Assembly: GCA_965649765.1 (NCBI GenBank)
Contig: OZ287753.1
Coordinates: forward strand, 40,486,001-40,550,000
DNA from: Bispira polyomma
Lineage: Eukaryota
Length of the DNA stretch: 64,000 bases
Direction of reading: 5' to 3'
The notes under the pieces are model-generated. The model was not told the origin of the DNA and did not search any database. It saw nothing but the letters and a program-made list of their open reading frames with translations. Positions 21,701 through 60,700 of this stretch are shown piece after piece (the first letter of the stretch is position 1; each line of letters starts with the position of its first letter). Both the position numbers and the translations under genes were made by a program.

Positions 21701-24700
21701 GTGGTGGAATATTAACTAGAAGACAACAGAGCAACAGAGAACTGGTGAAAATTGTATAACTGTCATGATTCTTTTTCCCTGTTTTCAGTGGAGTAGGCAT
21801 TACATAGACACTATTAAAGGTGACCACGTACCCTGCACATATCTATTCAAATAATAGAATGTTTACATAATAGAGGTGTTGCTGTGCATGTATCAGTTTT
21901 TCTTTTCCCTGTTTTCAGTGGAGTAGCCGTTACATAGATGCTGTTAAAGGTGACCACCCTCCCCATATCTATGCAGTGGCAGATCACGCTTACCAGGAGA
22001 TGATGCATCATCAACATAATCAGGTAACGAGTGTTTCAAACTGTTTACTAACCATATCAAACCATGAATTATTGCTTTTTAGCAAGATGTGAATGCTACC
22101 GGGTATGATTTTGTTGTTGGGTGTTGTCTGTTAAGTATAATTACCTTTATTTTTTTGGACAAAACACTACTAGTAGTAACATGTATATTTTGTGAGTTGT
22201 AAGCCACACTGCAGGCCTGGAGGTCCTACCCTTGGACAAGGTGCTTTACACAAAGTTATCCCACTCTACCCAGGTGTATCAATAGGTACCTGGCTGCTAA
22301 TGGGTGTTAGTCTTTATGCGCTGTATGTAGCAGCATGGCTAGTATGTTTCCTGAGGGAGTTGAGACTGAACAAATGGTTGGCAAGTGGAAGAACCCAGAC
22401 TGGGGGTGTAAACTGTGAAGTCGTATAATACCTCAATAGGGGTGACATCAACCTAGACACATTTACACACATTTTTAAGTTTCATGACAAACATAGTATG
22501 TATGATTTAGTTTGGATGACAACAGACCATTCCCATGAATGATCTGTACTTTATCTGTAGACTAGATTTTAGTCCTTTTGTTGTTTTTCTCACACAGTGT
22601 GTGGTGATCAGTGGTGAAAGTGGAGCAGGTAAAACAGAGAGTGCCAACTTCTTAGTACAACAGTTGACCATGCTAGGAAAGGTAAGAAAAGTTCAGAGAT
22701 AAATGTCTTTTAAGATACTACCAGTTTGAGGCTGTTGGTACACATCATCGTTTCTCTGATCACAAATTGGTTGTCTACTTTACCCAAGTGCAGTAATTAT
22801 AGTCGGTGTTTCAAAATACAGTCCATTCCAATTTCTAGTTTAAGTTTTTCAACGTTATATTGATGATGTTCTGTATGCCCCTTGGGCTGTATTCACAAAA
22901 GGGCTAAGCCATGTCTTTGTCTTACATCTACTAGTATACTTTTATGCTACATTGAAGACAATGTACTTATTATCACAGTCTTACAACTGTCGGGCAAGAA
23001 CGCTTTACAGAATTATAAATAAAGGTGGATGTATTATTTTAAAAGGCTTGTCACAAACAGTCACTCAGTACAATTACACGTACCATGTATCTTGAAAAAC
23101 TATTGCAGTAATTTAGTTATTCTGCAGCCAAGCTTGTAAGATTTGAAAAAAAAAGTGATGCTATCATAATTTTGATACGATTGAAAAGTCTTGTTTTGTG
23201 AATTATGTATATTTTCTTATTTTAGTTTGAGGAATATCACAGTACATGTATTACAAGATTTTACTGCAAAAGTTGATCAACATCAATTTGGAAGAATGAA
23301 GAATGTCTGCATCAAATCGAATATTCGAACGAAAGAAGTTTGGACAAAATAGAAGGCCTTTTGTAATTGTTGGAACTTAACACTAATTAAATGTTTCCAT
23401 ATTTTCAGGCACCTAACAGAAATCTAGAAGAGCGTATCTTACTTGTCAACCCTCTTGTTGAGGCGTTTGGGAATGCAGCTACTGTCATTAATGACAACTC
23501 CAGCAGATTTGGCAAATACCTAGAGATGTCATTTACACCATCAGGAAAAGTGACTGGAGGTGAGGTATACATCTGCAATGTATGAGACAGACAGTGCATC
23601 AGTGAACAATTTTCACCAGGAAGTAATTTCAACTGGCACAGTTATAGAAGCTGATATAGTATTACTGCTAAATTATTGTGCAAAACAGTGAAAGTTCATC
23701 TCCTTTGAAGGTTCAAATAATTGTTACAATATGAATATTTCAATTTTAAAAAAATGTTTAATTTCTGTGAAACATGGTCGTATTTATTCTAAAAAAAATT
23801 AAACAAGATGTTATTCCAATTCAATCTATTATAAGCAAATTCCAAAAATAACATTCAATGTTAGACATTAACTTAATAGAATGTAGAGAATGTCAAAAAT
23901 GAGGTTATTAAAACACACTGTGTATTTGTACAGCTTCCATGACAGAATACTTGTTGGAGAAATCCAGGGTGGTTCAACAAGCCAGGTAAGTCAGTCAGAT
24001 ACTGTCTCTCCTTGAGGCAAATATTAATTACGGTCATAGCTGTTTGATCCCCACTGGGAATTAGAATGTGTAGCTCGGTAGACACAGATGTTAGGGGTGA
24101 ATAATAAGTCCAATATTCATTTCTATACTTTATTTCAAGATTATATATAAAGTTCCAAAGATAAGCTGTGAACACTAACATTTGATGAACTCGTAATTCT
24201 CTCCTGTCCCAGAGTTACATTTTAATTTAGGATTTTGCTTCCTGTCCCTGCTCTGTGTCACTGTTATTGTGTGGAACAACCTTTCACTTACAGACTGCCT
24301 CCTGGTCCAAAAAGAATTAACACAAAATAGTGTAGGACCTAACGACAGGAGAAGGCTCTGCTCCATTTGTAGAATATTGTTTTGATGCAGCCTTTTTTTA
24401 TAAACACAGTATGACATCGCATATTCCTAGTGGGGATGAAACAATAGTAATATTCAGTATTAGCAATCAGGTACTAAAATATTAGGTCCCCATGCAGGAC
24501 TCGACATTTTGTGGGTTTCTTATGTTCAGAATTTGAATTAACACTTAAATATATTAGTATATGTATACTGCTTCCATCAGTAAGCAAGCTTTCATTTTCA
24601 CTTTCAAGTTTGAAAGCTTTATTTAATATAATCTCTTACCATTTGAATGTCTAAGTGTTTGATTTGATGAACTTATATTCACTTTCCCAAATTTAGATTC

Positions 24701-57700: not shown

Positions 57701-60700
57701 GTAGAGACTAGGTATCAGGATTTACAGGTCACAGGAAGTTCATAGTTATTACAATATTTATCAAGGATTTTGTGGATGTGCAACAAATAGTCATTGTCTC
57801 ATGATCTTATCTTGACATTTAACCTTGCAATTATGACCTTGACACTTACTTCACCCCCATTGCTGTAGAGTTATGGCATCTATGGTGCTTTTTTAATTGA
57901 ATTACGGTTTGGAACACATTCAAATATAATTTAAAAATATATTTGTATTTGATCGCTGACATATGTCTGTCAGTTTATGTCCTGCCTGCAAACTCTTTGG
58001 TTACATTCCTCCATCAAGTACACTACATAAGAAAATAAATGGCATTAAACCTTGAAAATTTCATGATCGGTGACAGCAAATAGTTATAGATAATTTACAG
58101 TAAACCACTGCATGAATATTTACAGTAATACTTTCTTCGTCAACCATATTCTAGTTTTTGTCAAATTATGCAGTTCATTCTTTGTCTATACTGAGGACCA
58201 TTTAGAGCATTGTGAATATGTGCATGTTTTCTTCAGGACCTTCTGTAGTATTTGTGGTATTTTGCTGAAGTTTTAGCTCAAGTAAATCATAACCTATGCT
58301 TATACAGGATCACGGTAGCTAGCCTAATAGTTGTTTTCGAATCCTGTTGGTTCCTTCATGTGGGAAAGTTTGTCAGGTACTTGCTGTAGAGCCAGTGGTT
58401 TACAATACTACAGCATTGGTTTTTTCCACCATTGAATCTGGCCATTGAGCTATATGACCTTAAAACTGTTGACTTGATGTAAAAGCCCAACTAAAATCTA
58501 AATACCTTTGCCTATATTACACAAATGGAGCCATATATTTTTACTCTTTAAGCTTTAATTCGATTTTGTTGCTTTACTCTGCTGCTGATTTTGTTTGTCT
58601 ATTTATTTCCTATTTGTCGATTTTAAAAGTTAATTCACTGCATAGTCAGCATTTACATATAGTAGATTTTTAACTCACCTTTGTGCAGATAATCTCATTC
58701 TTTTGTGTGATTGTTTTTAGCAAAAGAAAACAAATGTAACTTTTTCTTTAATTTCAACAGCATCTTTTTTCTATGTATGAATGCTTATTCTGTTTATTTC
58801 AAAAACAATAACAGATGTAGTAAATACCTTTTAACTCCTTTCTTTTAAAATGTAGTGTATCATAAATGCTACATTTATTTCTAATTACATATCAATATAT
58901 GAAGAAATATTATGCATACTATGCTTTATACGGTTATACCTAAAGATTTTTTAATATGAAACATTTGACTAGTATCCAATAAATAAATACATCTCACATT
59001 TTTAGATTTTGAACTAGAAAACTTTGTATATGATTCTGTTACAATATGGATTTTAATGTACATCATGGACGCTGGGTAACTTCTTTACTCTGCAGCTGAT
59101 TTCTTTAGTCCATTTTTTTCCTAGAGAGTAAGGGGCCAATGTGGGTTTAAAACCTGTTTGTTCCGTCATGTGGGAAAGTTTATCAATTACTTGCCATAGA
59201 TTTATAGTGCTTCAGTGCTGGTTTCTTCCACCATTAAATGTGGTCGTCATGATACGACGAAACCTGACTAAATTCAACTAAGTATATCCTAGAGAGTATA
59301 TTTAGAGTAACAGGCGTACAGATAATAGAGGTTCTACATTATTGGGACTAAAGGTTGCTGTGTAGTATATATCCTGTGGTATCCCATGGCCTAGTGGTTA
59401 CAGAGTTGCTATAGTGATTAGAAGGGCCTCATTTCAACTCCTGCCAATACCCCTAGTGGCAATTGTAGGATATAATCCTTGGGCGAGATGTGAGCGAGCC
59501 ATTGCCTACTGATGATGACCCAGGCTATGTTGTAGGACTATATTCCTTTTGGGCATAAGAGAATCAATAAAAATCCTGATGTAATATCGGTAGGGTGCTA
59601 TTAAAATAATAATAACAATACAGTGGACTGTAGAAGTGAAATGTGCAATATCCACAGGATTTGGTTCTAGTTATCACTTGCATCTAATTATATCTAATTC
59701 AAACAAGTATTGTTGAATGTTAAAACCACAGAATTGGTTCTAGTTATGGCTTGCATCTTATTATACCTAATTTAAACTGGTATTGTTGAATGTTGAGACC
59801 AAATAATTGGTTCTAATAACAGAGATTCTACTGTATTTAGATAACAAAAGTTCACATAATGTAAATTTACTGTAATATATTTAAAAGTTCGGATAACAGA
59901 GGTTGTATTGTTACTTGGTAATCCTCTCACAGCTCTTGGTACCTGGTGTATAGTAGGATATTCAAATTATACAGGTTGTATTGTTACTTGGTAATCCTTT
60001 CTCAGCTCTAGGTTCCTAGAGGATGATGGCCCCAGTCAGAGAGAAGAGTTACACAGAGAGACCAAAGACTTACAGCAGCAGATGGTACAGAGTCTGGAGG
60101 TGCAGAAAAAGGGTTCTCTGTCCTCTAGGTACATCCAGGAAGAGAAGAGGAGTCAGCGCATGGCCATGAGGGTCAGTCAGGTGAGGGAATATGTATATAA
60201 AGAAAGGAGAGGTCAGCGCATGGCCATGAGGGGCGGTTAGGTGAGGGAAAGTGTATATAGAAAGATAGAAGTCAGTACATGGCCATTATGGGCGATTAGT
60301 TGAGGGAATGTGTATATAGGAAGAGAGAAGAAGTCAGTACATGGCCATGAGAGGCAGTCAGGTGAGGGAATGTGTATATAGGAAGAGAGGAGTTAGTACA
60401 TGGCCATGAGGGGCAGTCAGGTGAGGGAATGTGTATATAGGAAGATAGGAGTCAGTACATGGCCATGAGGGGCAGTCAGGTGAGAGACTGTGTATATAGG
60501 AAGAGAGAAGTCAGTACCTGGCCATGAGGGGCAGTCAGATGATGGAATATTTATATAGGAAGAGAGAAGTCAGTACATGGCCATAAGGGGCAGTCAGGTG
60601 AGAGAATGTGTATATAGGAAGAGAGAAGTCAGTACATGGCCATTAGGGGTGGTTAGGTGGGGGAATAACCGGAGGAAATGAGAATAGAGTAAAATGTGTG

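Follow-up and report, generated by a model that had tools for sequence, protein, structure and literature searches.

Why the edges of so many exons, together with their splice sites, recur as tandem copies in the neighbouring intron is the question raised by a 64-kb stretch of the Bispira polyomma genome (contig OZ287753.1; C6:40486001-40550000 in the 1.035-Gb, 75-contig assembly that was searched), hereafter the window. Much of the window is filled by a myosin III gene on the plus strand, with PF00063 matches. A first-pass annotation made from the sequence alone had listed nine junctions with such local copies, and all nine are borne out, six of them clearly and three more weakly. At the myosin loci of this genome about one fifth of the donors are copied head-to-tail into the following intron, roughly 7-10 times the rate of intronic duplication. 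With moderate confidence, we regard the arrays as mirage minisatellites, i.e. neutral by-products of exon-associated tandem duplication that are filtered by splicing and amplified by unequal exchange.

Each junction was scored by the best match of the 24-mer centred on it to a copy lying 12-400 bp away. Six of the named junctions score 20-23 of 24, namely acceptors 21919 (22/24 at 130 bp) and 60006 (20/24 at 73 bp) and donors 33303 (23/24 at 88 bp), 46362 (22/24 at 106 bp), 47541 (21/24, unit about 61 bp) and 60180 (22/24, unit about 60 bp). The copies at 28953, 34047 and 25096 are weaker but real. Donor 28953 reaches only 17/24 at 43 bp, and donor 25096 has a 9-nt core in common with its 23-bp array, includes only 7 exon bases and shows irregular initial spacings. 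The gene and its arrays are placed as follows (window positions).

12620-63090, plus strand: myosin III gene with the end of the kinase domain, motor, IQ region and tail; 31 modelled exons and a large exon at about 50981-52666
21771-21850, plus strand: acceptor 21919 copied 130 bp upstream together with about 58 exon bases; use of the copy would give a frameshift and a stop
25089-27541, plus strand: array of donor 25096, a 23-bp unit that includes the donor, in about 106 assembled copies
28945-29030, plus strand: donor 28953 with the first of its copies, a unit of about 43 bp that takes in 9 exon bases; spanned by raw-read contigs
29035-29330, no strand: very high-copy dispersed element splitting the 28953 array (depth 50,000-280,000 against about 20 in unique DNA)
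29345-29690, plus strand: resumed part of the 28953 array, degenerate copies beyond the high-copy element
33266-33520, plus strand: array of donor 33303, three copies of an 88-bp unit with 38 exon bases
34046-34103, plus strand: duplicate of donor 34047, a perfect 28-bp duplication that starts 2 bases inside the exon; spanned by raw-read contigs
46349-46535, plus strand: array of donor 46362, two copies of a 106-bp unit with 14 exon bases; the intron parts align with gaps
47514-48002, plus strand: array of donor 47541, about eight 61-bp copies, donor choice uncertain; unique in the genome
59860-60020, plus strand: acceptor 60006 and one copy 73 bp upstream, the exon being placed by frame alone
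60140-60666, plus strand: array of donor 60180, about nine 60-bp copies with 41 exon bases; a stop precedes the second donor, which is in frame; no other occurrence in the genome

The units are mutually unrelated except for the splice consensus, and the two arrays used in a genome search (47541 and 60180) occur nowhere else, while the 23-bp array of 25096 has only look-alikes of 67-76% elsewhere. A dispersed mobile repeat or satellite family was therefore rejected, in agreement with the earlier proposal of independent local events. One of the reported unit sizes had to be revised: the unit at 28953 is about 43 bp long and consists of two 21-bp halves. The reported polarity, with donor copies downstream and acceptor copies upstream, is matched by the absence of exon-side copies at any of the junctions, but it is no evidence, since an exon that keeps its frame forces this outcome. 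Use of the second site would shift the frame or meet a stop at 9/9 window junctions, which argues for predicted normal splicing at the exon-proximal site. Donor 47541 is the best but not the sole in-frame donor; its rival 47505 would make the array wholly intronic.

The excess over background was measured against the fraction of intronic positions that form the first unit of a repeat, with a copy on the 3' side and none on the 5' side. By this test 4/30 window donors pass against a background of 1.7-2.5% (p 0.002-0.006); 2/31 window acceptors pass, which is not significant by itself. An independent set comprised 27 non-redundant loci around exons of other myosin genes in the same genome, drawn from 30 myosin loci of about 3.2 kb each; their junctions were placed by means of protein homology and a splice matrix trained on the window gene. 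Here copies are found at 15/59 donors against 1.8-2.3% (11-14-fold, p ~1e-12), a result that holds at thresholds of 18, 20 and 22 matches out of 24, and at 2-4/52 acceptors. The pattern that had been read as gene-wide is thus real but not specific to this gene; as far as myosin loci, the only ones in the test, can show, junction copying is genome-wide. Pooled, donors reach 19/89 (10.6-fold, p 2e-14) and acceptors 5/83 (3-fold, p 0.026). Donors and acceptors differ from each other (p 0.005-0.02). Tandem Repeats Finder, counted by events, gives the same picture, with 14 arrays that start in the exon and cross the donor against 1.15 expected. Arrays of five or fewer copies are still in excess (7/59 donors). 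Kinase-family loci, mostly intronless copies, supplied a further background value of 1.5%. The background climbs with GC and is 2.5-3.3% at the 40% GC of the donors, which lowers the excess to about 7-fold.

Exon conservation is not the source of the signal, since 24-mers that lie entirely in the intron, 20-50 bp past the donor, are first units as well in 9-18% of cases. First-unit frequency is highest at -10 to +20 of donors. The junction-focused process envisaged by the first-pass annotation is supported as an excess at exon edges, mainly at donors, for which R-loops, breaks or slippage would be candidate causes; donor-like motifs within introns are not clearly enriched. The donor motif alone was rejected as a cause, the 14/194 matches at intronic look-alikes sitting mostly inside junction arrays. 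Among the myosin III donors of other animals, copies were found at 1/34 in a sea star, 0/25 in a damselfly and 0/9 in a flatworm (1/68; p 1e-4 against the present genome). The structure is accordingly also found in other animals, and its rate in the present genome is high. In the sea-star gene, one donor has a mirage with 8.5 copies of a 66-bp unit (L063:28338-28897), and one acceptor is copied as well (26952).

In most arrays, units of 23-130 bp are repeated head-to-tail a whole number of times. Microhomology at the array ends amounts to 0-2 bases in clean cases, and in the others the ends are decayed. Copying of a short splice-site block with an unrelated spacer was mostly rejected, given that the intron parts align once gaps are allowed; 21919 and locus L023 fit it in part. 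The exon share of the unit, i.e. the position of the donor within it, is uniformly distributed (KS p 0.6). The longer the intron part of a unit, the fewer its copies (rho -0.84, n=23); conversely, copy number rises with exon share, also when unit length or GC is held constant (partial r 0.66 and 0.65, n=23). Three close paralogues share a 53-bp array that counts 12, 24 and 17 copies, and in the 25096 array an exact 526-bp block recurs at 665 bp; both point to unequal exchange. Three intron-containing myosin gene copies of 94-99% identity on three chromosomes (L006, L007 and L008 at C11:4.18 Mb, C8:1.23 Mb and C13:27.3 Mb) have arrays in common with differing copy numbers. Two read samples are identical over 28700-34500. 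At L017:1706-2173, a 26-bp array has an entirely exonic unit, and the duplication itself makes the donor that now adjoins the exon; a possible older donor lies 3 bases beyond the last copy, a candidate one-codon shift of the splice site.

The observations establish that the copies arose locally and in tandem, that they are in strong excess at donors and in weak excess at acceptors, that they decay neutrally and that copy number differs among paralogues. From these a course of four steps may be proposed for the mirage minisatellites. Short head-to-tail duplications of 23-130 bp would arise locally and more commonly when one end is exonic; candidate causes are effects of the chromatin or base composition of exons on replication or repair. 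The rate of birth at exon edges would be raised by the remainder left after GC (about 1.5-fold) and one-sided protection (up to 2-fold) are removed. Exons carry positioned nucleosomes, and flap-type duplications arise at Okazaki junctions; together these would offer one possible route to an exon bias. Splicing would then act as a filter: duplications wholly within the exon would be lost. A duplication across a donor would be tolerated, since splicing would take the first donor, the one next to the exon; one across an acceptor would be lost more often because the upstream copy would be met first. Such a filter is supported by human F7, in which a variable number tandem repeat (VNTR) offers several identical donors and splicing uses the one farthest upstream only (PMC1557585). 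Five further arrays stop at most 60 bp before an acceptor and exclude its AG (1.7 expected), which fits frequent duplication there that is purged when the AG is included. Arrays terminating 13-50 bases short of an acceptor were seen in the oriented loci L002, L004, L007 and L017. The survivors would expand by unequal exchange, chiefly those with mostly exonic units, an association that the copy numbers display and whose cause is presumed, and would finally decay without constraint, as the copies do. Three points weigh against this account. The step in birth rate at exon edges is itself unobserved and appears only as a residual after GC (about 1.5-fold) and detectability (up to 2-fold); the excess of units with an end no more than 5 bases from the donor (6/23) tilts the balance toward a break specific to donors; and all test loci are myosin genes, with junctions taken from homology and a matrix trained on the window gene, not from RNA.

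A donor-specific origin deserves the most attention among the alternatives, although we consider it rather unlikely. Mutagenesis coupled to splicing at the 5' splice site, through polymerase pausing, R-loops or topoisomerase cuts in the germ line, would give rise to duplications that begin in the exon and extend over the donor. Donors are indeed hit far more than acceptors, first units peak around the donor, and the 6/23 units that end within 5 bases of it exceed the 2.7 expected (p 0.04), three of them ending at exactly +5. Yet in 15/23 units the intron part exceeds 10 bases, and the position of the donor within the unit is uniform; acceptors too are in 3-fold excess, and the asymmetry between donors and acceptors is predicted by selection alone. 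Copies of spliced exon-exon junctions are absent, and an origin templated by mRNA was rejected accordingly. If splicing-coupled seeding did act genome-wide in this lineage, mirages would form a fossil map of splicing-coupled DNA damage.

Less probable still is a uniform duplication rate with arrays that merely persist longer at junctions, where the first unit is protected while deletions and newly inserted elements keep replacing the interior of introns. Tandem repeats do occupy 15-20% of the examined introns, intron parts of the units are more diverged than exon parts (18% against 7.5%), frequency increases with GC, and homogenisation makes arrays appear young. Protection of one copy, however, yields about 2-fold and GC about 1.5-fold against the 10.6-fold observed, and the excess remains at 22/24 identity and in the small arrays. 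A high uniform background filtered by selection alone, as the first-pass annotation had also considered, is therefore insufficient: survival bias accounts for about 2-fold of a 7-10-fold excess.

That the copies are selected decoy splice sites, tuning splicing or feeding nonsense-mediated decay, is very unlikely. Retention of GT in 231/239 aligned copies (102/107 in the 25096 array), most of which score as well as the true donor and many equal to or above it, appears to favour such a role, as does human ABCA7, in which one VNTR unit is sometimes retained (PMC5954066). But GT columns are as variable among copies as other G/T columns (8/32 against 82/279), and the 9-nt donor is no less variable than the remainder of the unit. 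No preference for a reading frame is seen in unit length, and the units are unrelated and not in common with the myosin III genes of other animals. Between exon and nearest copy, differences fall at 30/239 third positions and 30/464 others; this 2:1 ratio is the expectation when only the exon is constrained. The copies behave like unconstrained DNA that diverges neutrally, and decoy sites are unsupported. Origin from divergent alleles was rejected as well, a synonymous excess against the array consensus having vanished against the nearest copy (ratio 2.0). An assembly artefact is extremely improbable: the exact 526-bp block repeated inside the 23-bp array speaks for it, but many substitutions and gaps distinguish the copies, an inserted element splits one array, and raw-read contigs of two samples run without difference through the duplicates at 28953 and 34047, so that these are not assembly errors, and stop at the 33303 repeat as expected of a true repeat.

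In the exon model on which the junctions depend, all 31 placed exons have AG/GT ends and phases that chain. Searched one at a time against abalone myosin III, exons 1-16 and 18-24 are colinear with it, exons 17 and 25 match weakly, and exons 26-31 find no homology support. The boundaries of exon 13 are identical in a contig from a related animal (L062). The series of exon lengths around the arrays agrees with sea-star myosin III, the single extra intron (23560-23933) being without a repeat. Between exons 17 and 18, in the region of motor loop 2, lies a candidate in-frame microexon of 9 nt (35605-35613, three codons) with a good acceptor (9.8) and a fair donor (6.5). The large tail exon (50937/50981-52666, about 1.7 kb) has two candidate acceptors of differing phases and a weak donor, and contains an internal 42-bp coding repeat at 51207-51418. 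Intron 21 holds a reverse transcriptase fragment of a non-LTR (long terminal repeat) retrotransposon with an open frame of 363 codons (42483-43571), and smaller pieces with similar 3' ends lie near 2380-2600, 16040-16390 and 41300-41700. Elsewhere in the genome, many near-identical intronless protein-kinase frames of 411-418 codons (L037-L053, L057 and L061) are spread over most chromosomes, which suggests a kinase carried by a putative mobile element; a tandem kinase cluster lies on C4 at 97.6-99.1 Mb.

With copies at about one fifth of the donors, there are enough events to separate mutation bias from selection by contrasting donors with acceptors, rare with fixed alleles and expressed with silent genes. 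The donor excess renders the unexplained origin of mirages testable. The arrays may also serve as a natural large-scale test of the rule that the first donor wins, as up to 100 equal or stronger donors are apparently ignored. For gene prediction they call for caution, since junction copies yield false exon matches.

Among known systems, intron gain by tandem duplication of AG|GT (the Rogers model; PMC3265369) likewise involves tandem duplication that includes splice signals, but it duplicates exon-internal sequence and makes a new intron, whereas here existing introns beside conserved exons are lengthened. The first-pass annotation had judged that this model does not predict such arrays, and it was rejected here; the extra intron has no repeat. 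Duplication of the Rad27/FEN1 flap type, mediated by microhomology, resembles the present arrays in that short neutral duplications are purged from coding DNA, and differs in its microhomology from the 0-2 bases of the clean cases here; introns and splice sites are unmentioned in that report (PMC13167724). Closer are two human VNTRs, of 37 bp in F7 intron 7 (PMC1557585) and of 25 bp in ABCA7 intron 18 (PMC5954066), with the real donor in the first unit and look-alike donors in later ones. They are single loci, in contrast to about one fifth of donors here. The closest relatives are the amphioxus mirages of Adh3, the globins BflGb6 and BflGb9, troponin C and PGBD5 (PMC3087553, PMC3902484). In these, an exon-intron boundary on either side of the exon is duplicated in tandem in the manner of a minisatellite; the units are unrelated (10-160 bp there, 23-130 bp here), copy number varies, there are several per gene, and many copies retain splice signals. 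The present arrays agree in having boundary-spanning, locus-specific units at both donors and acceptors, with GT/AG kept in many but not all copies. Amphioxus mirages leave splicing undisturbed by RT-PCR (reverse transcription PCR), while normal splicing here is predicted from the reading frame, and their mechanism was called 'unclear' (PMC3087553). They were reported gene by gene, and neither a background rate nor a donor bias was found in these reports (PMC3087553, PMC3902484). The first-pass annotation had missed both these earlier descriptions, in amphioxus and in F7 and ABCA7, and the predominance of donors in the excess. The structure is already named; new relative to these reports are its rate, its donor bias and the higher copy numbers of exon-rich units.

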